Below, piece after piece: positions 19,953 to 47,172 of a DNA stretch of 64,000 bases. Origin of the DNA: Syncephalis fuscata S228 (lineage: Eukaryota; Fungi; Zoopagomycota); NCBI GenBank assembly GCA_025786725.1, contig JAHLTZ010000030.1, positions 124,001-188,000 on the forward strand. The letters are read 5' to 3'. Under the pieces are notes generated by a model that made no database searches, was not told the origin of the DNA, and saw only the letters and a program-made list of their open reading frames with translations. A program made the translations under genes and the position numbers. Numbering within the stretch: the first letter of the stretch is position 1; each line of letters opens with the position of its first letter.

Positions 19953-20152
19953 CATATATTCAGTATAATAGCGAATGTATTAAAAGAATAAAAATCATTT
20001 AACGCCAAATGTTATCATTATAAAATAATATCCAATTAAATAACGAATTTATAAAGAAGGATGGATATTAATGAATAAAGACATATTACTATTATTATAA
20101 TCAAAAATTGATTTATTAATGTATTTGTATATACGAATAGGAAGAACATATT

Positions 20153-23100
20153 TTACCAGGCAAGCTGCTCTTGACCGTCATTACAAGCAGCATTGGCAGC
20201 TGGAGCATCGCCGCTACCACAGCCACCTTGACTGGCAGCTGCCTCGCCATTATCTTGCATAGCTACACGGAATAGACGACCGCCATAGCGTTTATACATC
20301 TCGGTAACACCGCCACCAGCCATTAGACGTTCTTCCATAAGACTTAGGCCGAATGGGAAGCGTTCACCGCCACATTCGACTACACGCTGTTTAACATCAA
20401 TACGAATATCGGCACCTTCTTGGGCCAGTTCGTAGAAACGGTCATCAGTAATAATAATGCCCAAAAGCGACATCATAGGCTGGTTACGGCCGTAGATAAA
20501 GGCATATGATCGAGCAATGACTGCTTGAATACCAGCGCCGCGCAAAGCACGTGGTGCTTCTTCACGCGATGAGCCCGAGCCAAATCCAACGCCAGCTACA
20601 ATGATGTTACGGCCTTCAGCAACGCGTGGCACAAACTCCGGTCGGAAATACTGGAAGGCATGCGTGCCCAAATCTTCATCGCTAACACCAGGCATAAACT
20701 CGGCTGGAATAATAGCATCTGTGTCGACATGGTCATCAAATCGTTGTACTTTGCCACTAATCTCTGTTTCAAATTTGGGCAATGAAGCAGCATCTTCGCT
20801 GGCACTTGATGCATTGCCGTCCGATTCAACAGCAGTGGCCAGGACAGGATTGGGCTCGGAAATAACAATAGGATCGCCCTTTTCCATCCAGATCTCCAAC
20901 ATACGTTGGTAGCGTGTTTGGTCGATAACATTAAGCAATTCACGTGGATTGCGTACTTTCATCTCAAAGCTACTGGCAGCAACAGTAGCAGCACTGGCCA
21001 AGTTACCAATCGATCCCTTGCCCATACGATTCTTGAAGTTACGGTTCTGTGAGCTAAGCCATACTTCACCTTCACCGGCACGATCAGCAGCAACAGCAAT
21101 GCAGTAAGAACAGCCTGGTGCACCAATCTCAAAGCCGCACTTTTCGTACACTTCAAGTAGGCCAAGACGGCGTAGTTTGGCAACAATAGGCACGGAGCCC
21201 GGCGTTACCTTACGTTTGCCATTAACGGATGGTACCCAGCCACGGGCCAAACCAGCTTCAAGTACCAAGGCAGCCAAAATCAAATCTTCTTCGGCTGTGG
21301 TGCAAGCACCGATGAAACAGCCATCTAACTGCATACCCGCCACTTCATCAACTGGCACAACATTATCAGGCGATGGATAAAGAGCAATCAATGAATCGAC
21401 CTTGCTAAGATCGATAACATGCGATTCGGCATATTCAGCATCTGGATCGGAACGGAAGTAAAGTGCACTATTCTTATGCTGTGGATCTTTGCGCTTAGCA
21501 ATATAGGCTGCAGTCACTTCATCCGCTTCAAAGACACCGGCAATACCGCCAAATTCGGTTGCCATATTGGAGATGGCGAAGCGAGCATCGCAGCTTAAAT
21601 GACGCAGACCAGATCCGGTAAATTCAACAGCACGTTCAAATGCTACTGTATTACGCTTCAATTCACCAAGTACGTAAAGAATGGCATCTTTTCCACCAAT
21701 ACCAAATGGCGGCCGACCAACAAAGCTATTAGATATTAATTAATTAATTAAATAATTAAGTAAATAAGTAATTAAATAAATGAGTAAGTAAATAAGTAAA
21801 TAAGTAATAATACGCTATTGCTATATATTTGCTTACCGAATTTCAACAGTTTCAGGCACTTTAAACCAAGTCTCGCCTGTAACCAATGGCATAACAACAT
21901 CGGCCGCACCAAGACCAACGGCAAATGCACCTACATTACCGGCCGAACAACTATGCGAATCAGCGCCAATAACAATCATACCAGGCTGAGCACGTTCACG
22001 ACAGAATTCGGTGTGTAAAATGGTATAGTTGGGCTCGTAGAAATCAACCAACTCAGCTTCTTTGGCAAATGATGCACTTGCTTCGATAAGCTCTCGTGGC
22101 TTTGGCTGGTCATTAATACGTGGATCGACCGTGTGGTCAATAGCAAGCCAGAAACGATCATTGCGACGAATCTTTGGTCGTTCCATTTGATCGTATGTCT
22201 TCTCCATACCTTTCCAGGTAAGTTCGCTGGCTAGTGTCCAGTCAACGCTGACACACACCATATCACCAGGCTTGACTTGGCCAGGTCCTTCCAAACCAAT
22301 AGCACCATGGCAGATAATCTTTTCGCAAAGTGTCATGGGACGACGACCAACTGGACGAGTAAGCAAAAGACCCCGGTCTTCAGCCTTGCATAGCGATTGT
22401 AGTTCTGCACGCAAAAGCTCAACAATACGGCTACCAGTTTCAACTGTCGATTTGTCGCCTGCTAAATCGCGTGTACGATAACCGTGACCACCTTCATCAA
22501 CTGGGTCAAGTACACGTCGTACAGCATTCTCAACGGCATGTGCTTCAGCTTCCATCTTCAATGAGTAGCGCAGCATCAAAGCAACGCTTAGAATGGTACC
22601 GATTGGATTGGCAATGCCTTTACCGGCAATATCGGGTGCACTGCCGTGAATTGGCTCGTACAAACCGATACCTTCACCGTTAGGAAGACCATTCAACGAG
22701 GCGCTGGGCAATAAGCCAAGGCTGCCTGGAATAACACTGGCTTCATCACTTAGAATATCACCAAACATATTCTCAGTAAGTACAACGCCGTTAAGTGCAC
22801 GTGGATTCTTGACCATAAGCATAGCAGCTGAATCAACCAGATGGTGGTCAAGTGCTACCTTAGGGAATTCCTGCGCAAATGTTTCGGTGACAATGCGACG
22901 CCACAAGCGTGATGTAGCTAGTACATTGGCCTTGTCAATGCTGTGAACAGCTAGGTGTGGGCGTTGTTGCATAGCAAGGTGGCCAGCCAAACGAGCAATA
23001 CGACGAATTTCGTCGGCGCTGTATGGCATTGTATCCAAAGCTATTAATAGCAATTATAAGCAACTATTAATTTATGAATATATTGTATTATAGCTTACCA

Positions 23101-23694
23101 TGTCCATCAATGTCACCTTCTTTATGTTCGCCAAAGTAGACACCGCCGCATAACTCGCGTACTACGGTGAATTCAGTGCCACGTACTATTTCTTCCTTCA
23201 ATGGACTGCAAGCTACCAGCGACTCACTGGCAAATGATGCTGGACGCAGATTGGCGTATAAATCAAGTGATTTACGCAATTGAAGAATGCCTTCTTCTGG
23301 TCGTGGAGTCATACCCTTGCTGGGATCGGCTGGATCAACTGGATGTGGCCATTGAGGACCACCCACGGCACCTAGCAGAATTGCTTTGGCCGATCGACAA
23401 GCCTCTAGCGTTTCTGTTGGTAGTGGGACGCCTATAAATTAAAATCAATAACAATTAAATAGACAGCTACTATTAGTAACATTTTTATTATTACACGTAG
23501 TTCAGATACTTGCCTGTTGCTTCGATAGCTGCACCACCAATTAAAGCGTGCTCAATCTTTAGTGACGTGCCTAGACGGGCACCGCGTAGCTCGTTTACGG
23601 CTTCGAGCACTTTAATTGCTTCAGTACAGACTTCAGGGCCGATGCCATCGCCCGATACGACGACAATCTTTTCTTCGCGTAAATTATTCGACAT
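20153..23694 (-). CDS. LEU2-LEU1: Fusion protein (~1096 aa): 3-isopropylmalate dehydrogenase (LEU2/LeuB) + aconitase-family dehydratase large domain (LeuC/HacA-like) + swivel small domain (LeuD/HacB-like)
   Basis: Exons 23694-23514, 23431-23099, 23040-21837 and 21725-20153 total 3291 nt in one frame. IPMDH motifs: [63 protein letters not shown]. Dehydratase motifs: [40 protein letters not shown]; [30 protein letters not shown]. Confidence 0.93.
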
Positions 23695-24307: not shown

Positions 24308-25521
24308 TTAACCAGGTGGGAGCATTGTAGCATCGACCTTGGGCGAGTCATCTGTCGCAGCATCCACTTCATCTGCGTCTTCTCCAAGAATAGGTGCTCG
24401 AGGCATTGCCATAGCGCCTAGAAATAAATAAATAAACAAGTTACACGTCTAAAGACAATATATCTAATAGTATGGCTTACCACTACGAGCTGCTTCCAAA
24501 ATACCAAATGGCTGTACCAATTTAACAAAGGCGTCAATGCGATTGGGCTTGGCACATAGCTCAATAACCACCGAACCAGAACTAACATCAATTACACGAC
24601 CACGGAAAAGACTCGTTAGTTCAGAAAGACCTCGCAGATTGAACTGTGTCTCTTGTAGCATGGCTAATGGATCAACCATATCATTTTGGTCCTATAATCA
24701 ATAATATAATCAATAAATTGATTATTATCTTTAATGTCTTTTTATTACTTACTTGCTCAAGTGATTCTTCCGTATCTTTCTTATGTATTAATCGTTGGCG
24801 AATCATTTCTTGTGCAGCACCCAATGTCGATACCTTGATCAATAGCAATTCTCGTTCAACTAAACGTGAATTTGTATAATCAATGACGGCCCATACTGGT
24901 ACCTAATCCCTTGTTAGATTAACATACACTATTTACATACTATATCTTTATTCATCTTACCAAATCTTCAAGCTGACGTCTAGCTTGTTCAACGACCGAC
25001 TCTTGCCCTTTAACAATAATCGTCATACGACTTAAATCACGTACTTCAGTGCGAGATACAACTAAGCTTTCAATGTTAAAGCCACGTCCAGCAAGAATGC
25101 CGCTCACTCGGCTAAGTACACCCGGCTCGTCTTGGACAAGACAGCTAAGTACACGACGCTGAGATGGCTGTGCAGCATTCTCTGGCGTGTTGTACAGTAT
25201 ATTAGTTACCGCTTCCTCGGCCGTGGGCGTTGGTGGAGTCGGTAGCGGTGGAAAGTGCCGGCGATGGTGGTGCAACTTGAATGCAATGGCCGAGGTCGAC
25301 GGGACCGTTGATTCAGAACGGCATTGGATGCTATTACGTTGATGACCAACGACCGTTGAATTGCTGTTGCTTGATGAACTAACGACGGCTGGTAGTATCG
25401 TACGCTATAATGGCACCATTAGTATCACGTCAAATAGTCTCATTAAACGCGTGTCATTTACCTGAGCAATACGAGCACACGCCAGGCGCGTTACAGCACT
25501 AGACGTTTTAAGTAGAAGCAT
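24308..25521 (-). CDS. ILV6: Acetolactate synthase regulatory (small) subunit, mitochondrial; 5 exons
   Basis: Presequence MLLLKTSSAVTRLACARIAQ; AVTNILYNTP; LSCLVQDEPGVLSRVSGILAGRGFNIESLVV..LSRMTI..VEQARRQLEDLVPVWAVIDY; ERELLLIKV; C-terminal LPPG*. Confidence 0.95.
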
Positions 25522-45888: not shown

Positions 45889-47172
45889 ATGGCTTCCTTT
45901 GCTCGTCAGCTTCTACGTTCGGCGCCACGTACAACGGCCACCTTGACTTCCCGTGTCGCTGCTCGTGCCACACTTACCACACTTGCTCGCCGTTCAACTC
46001 TGCAAGCCGTGTCGCGTCGTGCTCCTGTTGCTGCCATCGGTTCGGTAAGTAGAAGCCGCGTTAATACTGGTCCGACAACTATATTTACTTATGTTTTGAC
46101 TATTATTTTCATAATAGGTACGCACTTTTAAAACACTCGACTTTGGCGGTACCAAAGAAGTCGTTTACGAACGATCGATTATCCAAATGAGAAGCTTAAG
46201 AAAATCTTTGCTCAAGATACACTTGCCGTGATCGGCTATGGTCCTCAGGGCCGTGGTCAATCGCTCAACTTGCGCGACAATGGCCTTAATGTTGTTGTAG
46301 GCGTGCGTAAAGACGGTCGCTCCTGGAAACAAGCCGTTGAAGAAGGCTGGACACCCGGTAAGAACCTTTTCGAAATTGAAGAGGCTTGCTCGCGCGGTAC
46401 CGTCATCATGAATCTACTTTCTGATGCGGCCCAGACTCAATTGTGGTCAACAGTGAAGAAATATCTTACAAAGGGCAAAACCCTTTACTTCAGCCACGGC
46501 TTCTCTGTTGTCTATCACGATCAGACAAAGATTACGCCACCAGCAGACATTGATGTCGTCCTCGTAGCGCCTAAGGGATCTGGATTTACGGTCCGTCGTC
46601 TCTTTGAACAAGGCCGTGGTATCAACTCGTCGTATGCCGTCTACCAAGATGTATCTGGCCAGGCTAGCGAGCGTGCCCGTGCTCTAGGCATTGCCGTCGG
46701 CAGTGGCTATCTCTACGAGACGACCTTTGAAAAGGAAGTCTACTCGGATTTGGCTGGTGAGCGTGGTGCGTTGATGGGTGGTATTTACGGCCTATTCCTC
46801 GCTCAGTATGAAGTATTGCGCGCACGTGGTCACTCGCCATCCGAAGCGTTTAATGAGACTGTCGAAGAGGCAACTCAATCGCTCTATCCACTCATTGGTG
46901 AAAAGGGCATGGACTGGATGTACTCGAACTGCTCGACCACTGCTCAACGTGGTGCTCTCGACTGGTACCGTCCATTCCACGACGCATGCAAGCCAGTGTT
47001 TGAACGTCTATATGATCAAGTAGAAAATGGTGCCGAAACACGCCGTAGTCTCGTTGAGAACTCACGTCCCGACTACCGTGAACGTTTGGAGGCTGAGCTC
47101 AAGGAGATTGACGAGCATGAGATGTGGCGTGCTGGCAAGACTGTGCGCAGTCTTCGCCCAGAGAATCAATAA
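45889..47172 (+). CDS. ILV5: Ketol-acid reductoisomerase, mitochondrial; 2 exons
   Basis: R/A/T-rich presequence; intron 46045-46117; LDFGGTKEVVYER; IGYGPQGRGQSLNLRDNG; SHGF; VAPKGSG; EVYSDLAGERG; NCSTTAQRGALDW; VRSLRPENQ*. One apparent 1-nt deletion at ~46177. Confidence 0.96.

Follow-up and report, generated by a model that had tools for sequence, protein, structure and literature searches.

Gene organization and expression

We analysed a stretch of 64,000 nucleotides from Syncephalis fuscata S228 (Fungi; Zoopagomycota), hereafter the window, which corresponds to positions 124,001 to 188,000 of the forward strand of contig JAHLTZ010000030.1 in GenBank assembly GCA_025786725.1. A four-exon gene lies on its minus strand (23694 to 20153, in window coordinates) and encodes a protein of 1096 amino acids, in which a dehydrogenase of the LEU2/LeuB type is joined in one chain to a [4Fe-4S] dehydratase; the Pfam domain order is Iso_dh, Aconitase, Aconitase_C. 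The fusion gene is real and is expressed as a single spliced mRNA. Its best explanation is probably a vertically inherited, cytosolic, bifunctional enzyme of leucine biosynthesis.

Exon 1 (23514..23694) encodes residues 1-60 and the first base of codon 61, which make up the N-terminus of the isopropylmalate dehydrogenase domain with the NAD-binding motif GDGIGPEV. Exon 2 (23099..23431) covers residues 61-172, with split codons at either end, and carries the substrate-binding arginines in a stretch of 13 residues and the catalytic Tyr region in one of 11. Exon 3 (21837..23040, 1204 nt) contains three parts. The first is the C-terminal half of the dehydrogenase (22418..23040, residues ~172-379), where the catalytic Lys lies in DKANVL and the metal-binding Asp residues lie in a 14-residue motif. 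Then follows a linker of about 27 residues (22337..22417, residues 380-406), which fills the gap between the NCBIfam profile ends and ends in RPxGRRP. The third part (21837..22336) is the start of a type-2 LeuC/HacA-like large dehydratase domain, including DSHSC; it begins at Met407 (MTLCEKI), where position 1 of PRK00402, IPMI_arch and hacA_fam aligned to exon-3 residue 235. Exon 4 (20153..21725) encodes the remainder of the large domain (20936..21725), the LeuD/HacB-like small (swivel) domain (20282..20761, residues ~895-1054) and a low-complexity C-terminal tail of about 42 residues (20153..20281), which ends in Leu-Ala-Trp and is followed by the stop codon TAA (20155-20153).

The three introns, all on the minus strand like the exons, split the codons GGC, GCT and CGC, respectively. 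Intron 1 (23432..23513) has 82 nt and GC-AG ends (GCAAGT...TTATAG), while intron 2 (23041..23098, 58 nt) and intron 3 (21726..21836, 111 nt) are both GT-AG introns (GTAAGC...TAATAG). In the public run X1, a single contig of 3688 nt matched the window with 0 mismatches from 20140 to past 23750 and thus spanned the whole frame. It omitted exactly 21726-21836 and 23041-23098, and the 82 nt of intron 1 were also missing, with a joint that was ambiguous by 4 bases and compatible with GC..AG ends. The contig is free of introns and therefore derives from spliced RNA, which confirms the gene model.

An earlier interpretation of this locus, made from the letters alone (the sequence-only reading), had placed the junction between dehydrogenase and dehydratase inside one uninterrupted exon and had given a spliced frame of 1096 amino acids with no stop. 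Both points held. The junction, Met407 at base 22336, is within exon 3 and is spanned by the X1 contig, in which no stop or frameshift was found. The in-frame translations of exons 1-4 (60, 110, 400 and 523 amino acids) contain no stop and, together with the three split codons, agree with the predicted length. A gene-model artefact is ruled out by the spliced contig and by the conserved linker described below.

The same reading had found no N-terminal presequence, and our analysis agrees with it. The dehydrogenase profile match begins at residue 9, and upstream of the ATG (23694) the first in-frame stop is 20 codons away with no ATG in between. Therefore, there is no space for a presequence.

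Two other features of the transcript were observed. The donor of intron 1 is GC (GCAAGT) and not GT, and the transcript contig shows that the intron is removed. At its upstream end the contig runs about 304 nt past 23750 toward the neighbouring ILV6-like gene, so that either the 5' leader is long or the transcript overlaps the 3' end of the neighbour. The letters adjoining base 20140 at the opposite contig end are adaptor and were not read as a poly(A) site.

The dehydrogenase domain

Profile scores for the window protein were obtained exon by exon, and the other searches used database orthologs. The top NCBIfam model in each dehydrogenase exon was leuB (TIGR00169), with 45.7, 126.8 and 254.8 bits, the last of them over exon-3 residues 1-207. 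These scores add up to 427 bits, as a simple sum of exons scored singly, against a cut-off of 353.2 bits. The ortholog of Syncephalis plumigaleata, which is 90% identical, reached 380 bits with the same model and cut-off. Homoisocitrate, tartrate and isocitrate dehydrogenase models were far weaker than leuB on these exons, and the closest stand-alone relatives of the domain are basidiomycete LEU2 proteins and one chytrid 3-isopropylmalate dehydrogenase (IPMDH).

The dehydrogenase motifs, GDILSD among them, are all present, with the catalytic Tyr and Lys, three metal-binding Asp and the substrate arginines. The roles of these residues are taken from established IPMDH structures. In an alignment of 46 full-length orthologs, the columns of the catalytic motifs either do not vary or reach at least 90% conservation. 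Judged by score and residues, the N-terminal part is predicted to be a true LeuB/LEU2 3-isopropylmalate dehydrogenase. A tartrate or D-malate dehydrogenase combined with a maleate-hydratase-like module was also considered, and it was ruled out by the tartrate dehydrogenase models, which stayed far below leuB.

The dehydratase domain

The protein had been labelled a LEU2-LeuC-LeuD fusion. The LEU2 part of this label stands, but the dehydratase is not of the Leu1-type LeuC/LeuD: the canonical LeuC/Leu1 model TIGR00170 gave only 111 bits on exon 4 against its cut-off of 560.25, and 57, 55 and 27 bits at the fusion locus in the genome search. The best models were instead the archaeal-type isopropylmalate isomerase (IPMI) and HacA models (IPMI_arch, hacA_fam) and the single-chain model PRK07229, all under their cut-offs. 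PRK00402 (NF001614) fitted the large domain best, with 108 and 182.4 bits over the two exons against a cut-off of 385, and it gave 285 bits on the S. plumigaleata ortholog. The cut-offs of the other two type-2 subfamily models, 410 bits for TIGR02086 and 386 bits for TIGR01343, were likewise not reached.

The small domain, with PF00694 (Aconitase_C) at 51.1 bits against a cut-off of 22.8 and a GSSRE motif in a conserved 10-residue stretch, has the features of LeuD/HacB proteins; TIGR02087 (LEUD_arch) scored 105.4 bits, slightly under its cut-off of 108.95. The catalytic motifs and all three cluster cysteines had been reported as intact, and we found the same: the type-2 ligands Cys714 (GACTT), Cys778 and Cys781 (GCSYC) are present together with DSHSC. 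Two of these cysteines, Cys778 and Cys781, do not vary among the 46 orthologs, and the conservation of Cys714 is 90% or higher. Among solved structures, the subunits of the Methanocaldococcus isopropylmalate/citramalate isomerase and homoaconitase come nearest (large subunit, E 2e-32; small subunits, E 2e-20 and 7e-19). From these comparisons, the dehydratase half is best placed in the type-2 LeuC/HacA group, as a eukaryotic branch that has diverged and scores below threshold, and not as a Leu1/LeuC equivalog.

The dehydrogenase could act in leucine synthesis while the dehydratase acts on another hydroxy-acid, such as citramalate, a homocitrate-like compound or another intermediate of 2-oxoacid elongation, with the isomerase gene missing from the assembly. 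Such an arrangement would be consistent with the profile results, in which IPMI, homoaconitase and "putative aconitate hydratase" models matched the dehydratase about equally, all under cut-off, and in which solved HacB and LeuD small subunits scored alike against the fused small domain (76 vs 71 bits). We consider it unlikely, and part of the reason is the specificity loop, which lies within a 13-residue stretch of the small domain. After DTDAIIP this loop reads A-x-F-M-P-G (IIPAxFMPG) in nearly all fused proteins, with Physarum and Neolecta at the two ends of the range and the Hypocreales paralogs included, and it is changed in every stand-alone group. Both the LeuB-dehydratase fusion and this near-invariant loop are conserved across fungal phyla, and the near-constant loop would fit a single shared substrate of the fused forms.

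Some lineages show other loops. Certain Dimargaritales copies (P0303, P0321, P0319, P0162, P0166), partly fused, are without the FMPG loop (e.g. AQAIGAG), which may be a lineage-specific change of substrate, and Tieghemiomyces has two fused paralogs. Oomycetes have two stand-alone type-2 single-chain dehydratase paralogs (P0171/P0253, P0227/P0254, P0182/P0234) whose loops differ between the paralogs, and which are inconsistently named in the sources as aconitate hydratase or isopropylmalate dehydratase.

Leucine genes in the assembly and around the fusion

The searched assembly comprises 29.4 Mb in 371 contigs. Four aconitase-family loci were found in it: the fusion gene, one homoaconitase and two aconitase-like loci, of which one (C345) was classified by NCBIfam and the other (C314), with strong Pfam Aconitase and Aconitase_C matches, is presumed to be the mitochondrial aconitase. 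No locus exceeded 84 bits with TIGR00170, and neither a canonical LeuC or LeuD signal nor a second leuB-like gene was detected in the 29.4 Mb. An isopropylmalate synthase (IPMS) with a LeuA_dimer domain and a dihydroxy-acid dehydratase (ILV3) are present. For steps 2 and 3 of leucine synthesis, the fusion is thus the sole candidate in this assembly. This inventory, which presupposes a reasonably complete assembly, is the main argument that the type-2 domain is most likely an isopropylmalate isomerase. It also speaks against a dehydratase with another substrate, since each of the four aconitase-family loci has an assignment.

The fusion's immediate upstream neighbour (24308-25275, minus strand) encodes an ILV6-like acetolactate synthase small subunit (ACT_AHAS_ss and ALS_ss_C). 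An ILV5-like ketol-acid reductoisomerase gene (KARI_N and KARI_C; 46228-47172, plus strand) is also in the window, 23 kb from the fusion. This loose linkage recalls the ilvF2-ilvE2-leuB1 cluster of Mortierella alpina.

Near-identical dihydroxy-acid dehydratase copies (ILVD_EDD) were observed on contigs C322, C40 and C129, and isocitrate-dehydrogenase-like copies (Iso_dh) on C321 and C96. They are either recent duplications or uncollapsed duplicates of the assembly.

Conservation of the linker and the C-terminal tail

All 151 columns that are invariant among the 46 full-length orthologs are kept in the window protein, and so are 342 of the 346 columns that reach at least 90% conservation; among the four departures, one merely reflects a split codon at an exon boundary. 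The linker belongs to the conserved parts. Its consensus in the 46 sequences is RPxGRRP followed by MTxCEKII, and the Arg of GRRP is invariant. An AlphaFold2 model was made on a 1093-residue ortholog (P0295, 71% identical to the window protein), with a mean predicted local distance difference test (pLDDT) score of 84.7 and a predicted template modelling (pTM) score of 0.83. In this model the linker is ordered (pLDDT block means 74-96) and extends the last helix of the dehydrogenase. A pTM of 0.83 for a multi-domain chain of 1093 residues suggests a defined domain arrangement in the predicted structure.

Run X2 comes from an organism that is about 95% identical. Three contigs matched the gene without indels, and 22 of 24 changed codons were synonymous, including exon-3 codons 232 and 234 in the linker; one of the contigs spans the junction without gaps (22119-22542). 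It means that the fused frame is under purifying selection in this relative too.

These data also bear on the idea that the locus makes two separate enzymes, through an internal promoter or a translation start at Met407. The dehydratase domain begins exactly at this residue, and an assembled X1 contig does not prove that all transcripts are full-length. We nevertheless regard separate products as very improbable. No stop or change of frame occurs along the fusion frame, and the linker is conserved in 46 orthologs, has only synonymous changes in X2 and is ordered in the model with pTM 0.83, which is a constraint not expected of an untranslated spacer. A single fused product of the two modules is thus preferred.

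The C-terminal tail is disordered in the ortholog model (pLDDT about 30), and its last residue is almost constant: Trp closes the chain in 84 of 85 full-length homologs, with LAW as the commonest ending (42/85). A C-terminal tripeptide [LIM]-[DES]-[WF] in yeast Leu1 and other cytosolic Fe-S proteins recruits the targeting complex of the cytosolic iron-sulfur assembly (CIA) system (bioRxiv 10.1101/2023.05.19.541488). The L-A-W end fits this consensus at positions -2 and 0, but Ala at -1 is outside it as published. The tail, together with the absence of a presequence, would support a cytosolic location of the enzyme and cluster insertion through the CIA system. The tail also has two cysteines about 8-14 residues apart (here GGCGSG...AAC) before Leu-Ala-Trp, and this pair recurs in fused and stand-alone homologs, oomycete ones included.

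Distribution and phylogeny

An exhaustive profile search with exon 3 returned junction-spanning proteins, including one of 1092 amino acids from Pestalotiopsis fici. A search with the junction region of a database ortholog as query gave about 115 further proteins, 85 of them with at least 1000 amino acids, and nearly all have the architecture PF00180 + PF00330 + PF00694. The taxonomic spread was read from the organism names given by the sources. The fusion occurs in Blastocladiomycota (Allomyces, Blastocladiella, Paraphysoderma, Sorochytrium), Chytridiomycota (Synchytrium, Entophlyctis, Polyrhizophydium, Quaeritorhiza), Neocallimastigomycota (Piromyces), all three subphyla of Zoopagomycota, Mortierellomycotina, Glomeromycotina, Endogonales and Calcarisporiella, and in the early ascomycete Neolecta. 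A divergent fused clade (about 50% identity) is found in Fusarium, Clonostachys, Verticillium, Pseudogymnoascus and Pestalotiopsis. Entries labelled Nk52 and Phypoly, which we take to be a nucleariid and Physarum, respectively, are likewise fused.

A maximum likelihood tree of the dehydratase part was made with a quick search and midpoint rooting, and it does not settle the deep relations. The closest named ortholog of the window gene is that of Syncephalis plumigaleata (Zoopagales; 90% identity over 1036 columns), with which it groups at 100% support in the Shimodaira-Hasegawa-like approximate likelihood ratio test (SH-aLRT). Both genes fall inside a fusion clade of Zoopagomycota and Mucoromycota (97% SH-aLRT) that is sorted largely by fungal lineage. 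Outside this clade fall the fused paralogs of Hypocreales and the proteins that stand alone in Dikarya, Mucorales and oomycetes; a few "stand-alone" rows within fused clades are probably truncated gene models.

The window gene is a member of the PF00180 + PF00330 + PF00694 family: it has these domains in this order within a single frame, and the tree places it as an ortholog. In nearly all fungal phyla outside Dikarya the fusion is the form usually found, and the window gene is an ordinary ortholog. The sequence-only reading could not tell how widespread the architecture is, and the search shows that it is neither rare nor new. It is present many times in NCBI, UniProt and EukProt, mostly under automatic names, and no paper describing or testing the fusion was found in the open-access full-text literature, a search that did not cover subscription journals. 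The statement that Leu1 and Leu2 are separate proteins in Dikarya is right for the canonical genes, but it needs to be qualified, since the fusion is also present in Neolecta and in the Hypocreales/Pestalotiopsis paralog clade.

For "two-domain" metagenome proteins of about 905-972 amino acids a bacterial origin was considered. This was rejected: the contigs look fungal (a Fungal_trans neighbour, fragmented gene calls), and the proteins stop inside the small domain at a likely intron start. Four other metagenome proteins (L022:585-5261, on an ENA contig of 107,653 bp, and P0003, P0362 and P0378), of about 1340-1570 amino acids, have a bacterial-type IPMS catalytic domain (HMGL-like and HCS_D2, without LeuA_dimer) before the same dehydrogenase and dehydratase modules. 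They are encoded in intron-less frames on eukaryote-like contigs, and the loop in their small domain is not the FMPG loop seen in the two-enzyme fusions. Loss of the regulatory LeuA_dimer domain is also typical of secondary-metabolism synthases. By its domain content, the triple fusion would tie the type-2 dehydratase to the synthase-isomerase-dehydrogenase triad, and that a relative is also joined to an IPMS catalytic domain speaks against a different substrate of the dehydratase. Stand-alone relatives of the dehydratase coexist with canonical Leu1 in Dikarya, which points to some other role there and favours a different substrate.

Paralogs of IPMS, aconitase and IPMDH serve homotyrosine formation in fungi (PMC7778625), and the fusion could by analogy with these echinocandin enzymes be a chain-elongation module of secondary metabolism and not a primary leucine enzyme. 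The divergent fused clade in Hypocreales, Pestalotiopsis and Pseudogymnoascus, whose hosts have the canonical genes too, would fit this idea. For the window gene we give it hardly any credence. It is the only LeuB-type gene in the genome, it belongs to the main lineage-following clade and not to the Hypocreales paralogs, and it adjoins ILV6 and lies in the same window as ILV5, with no secondary-metabolite genes seen beside it.

Proposed function and origin

The bifunctional leucine enzyme that we favour would work as follows. Residues 1-380 would be the only LEU2/LeuB-type 3-isopropylmalate dehydrogenase of the organism. Residues 407-1054 would form a single-chain type-2 LeuC-like and LeuD-like [4Fe-4S] dehydratase, most likely the isopropylmalate isomerase, because the assembly is without a Leu1-type gene. 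The conversion of 2-isopropylmalate to 3-isopropylmalate and then to 4-methyl-2-oxopentanoate would thus take place on one protein, and the disordered tail ending in Leu-Ala-Trp would probably recruit the CIA machinery for cluster loading. We infer in this way the substrate of the dehydratase, the cytosolic location and CIA dependence and, as the sequence-only reading had suggested, any kinetic coupling of steps 2 and 3. Substrate channelling between the fused active sites may also occur.

Several points weigh against this explanation. The dehydratase half is under the curated cut-off of every NCBIfam model, and therefore its substrate is not assignable from sequence alone. In an assembly of 371 contigs a missing Leu1 gene is not fully excludable. 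The RNA evidence from X1 is an assembled contig and would be compatible with an extra internal transcript or a translation start at Met407. Mortierella alpina is reported to have a Leu1 homolog (LeuA2, BLAST E = 0) alongside the LEU2 homolog LeuB1 (PMC8880518), a coexistence that would also be expected if the dehydratase had another substrate, and the fused dehydratase may be redundant or differently used in some lineages, e.g. Mortierella. A measured enzyme activity for any member of the fusion family was not found in the open-access literature.

A wider reading is more tentative, and we think it somewhat less probable than its opposite. The ancestor of fungi could already have made leucine with the fusion of LEU2 and a type-2 isomerase, and so perhaps could that of a wider group, in view of the Nk52 and Phypoly entries. 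The bacterial-type Leu1 and the stand-alone Leu2 of Dikarya and Mucorales would then be the result of a later replacement and fission, with the rigid linker favouring the hand-over of 3-isopropylmalate. Replacement of isopropylmalate synthase is a known parallel to the proposed replacement of Leu1. If this is true, the fusion alone carries steps 2 and 3 in a zoopagalean without Leu1, and the linker fixes the geometry of the active sites.

The analysis corrects the annotation of the locus to one gene that would serve two leucine steps, and its dehydratase is not of the type that the textbook pathway of yeast would suggest. The fusion is usual in most early-diverging fungi, yet it is only automatically named and is without a functional study in the open-access literature, and where leucine metabolism has been studied in Mortierella, the LEU2 homolog is regarded simply as a dehydrogenase. 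It bears on how the leucine pathway of Dikarya was rebuilt. The points at stake are whether the type-2 domain is a real isomerase, whether it is redundant with the canonical enzymes where both occur, and whether intermediates are channelled.

Comparison with known systems

The orthologous fusions of Syncephalis plumigaleata, Allomyces macrogynus, Rhizophagus clarus, Piromyces finnis and Neolecta irregularis have the same domain order and about 1040-1130 amino acids, and they share with the window protein the linker, the cluster cysteines, the FMPG loop and the C-terminal Trp. The Syncephalis protein shares 90% identity with the window protein and the others share 60-72%, and nothing of substance differs. 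Their entries are named "3-isopropylmalate dehydrogenase", "putative aconitate hydratase" or "hypothetical protein".

In Saccharomyces cerevisiae, Leu2 is the ortholog of the N-terminal domain, and the proposed overall chemistry is the same. Leu1, like the dehydratase of the window, is a single-chain [4Fe-4S] enzyme with large and small domains and a C-terminal Trp as CIA signal. However, Leu1 and Leu2 are separate cytosolic enzymes for steps 2 and 3 in yeast and one chain in the window, and Leu1 represents the bacterial LeuC/LeuD type (TIGR00170), to which the window protein does not belong.

The isopropylmalate/citramalate isomerase (4kp1/4nqy, large subunit; 3vba, small subunit) and the homoaconitase (4kp2, 2pkp) of Methanocaldococcus jannaschii share with the fused dehydratase a compact large subunit of type 2, about 420 residues long. 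They consist of two separate subunits with no joined dehydrogenase, whereas the window protein has both dehydratase domains in one chain with the dehydrogenase. Archaeal sequences of the specificity loop were reportedly described by Jeyakanthan et al. in 2010, and the fungal fused proteins carry FMPG in its place.

In Mortierella alpina, LeuB1 belongs to the ilvF2-ilvE2-leuB1 cluster and is treated as a plain dehydrogenase, and the words "fusion" and "fused" are absent from the text of the paper (PMC8880518). LeuB1 and the window gene are both LEU2 homologs linked to ILV6 and ILV5 homologs, and other Mortierella species have the fusion at 70-72% identity to the window protein. The difference is that M. 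alpina is reported to have a Leu1 homolog and the window genome has none.

Echinocandin homotyrosine is made with fungal IPMS-, aconitase- and IPMDH-like paralogs (PMC7778625), so that the same three reaction types are recruited together as in the proposed pathway of the fusion. The homotyrosine enzymes are separate proteins of a secondary-metabolite cluster with an aromatic 2-oxoacid substrate, whereas the window gene is the sole LeuB-type gene of its genome and is located among genes of primary branched-chain amino-acid metabolism.

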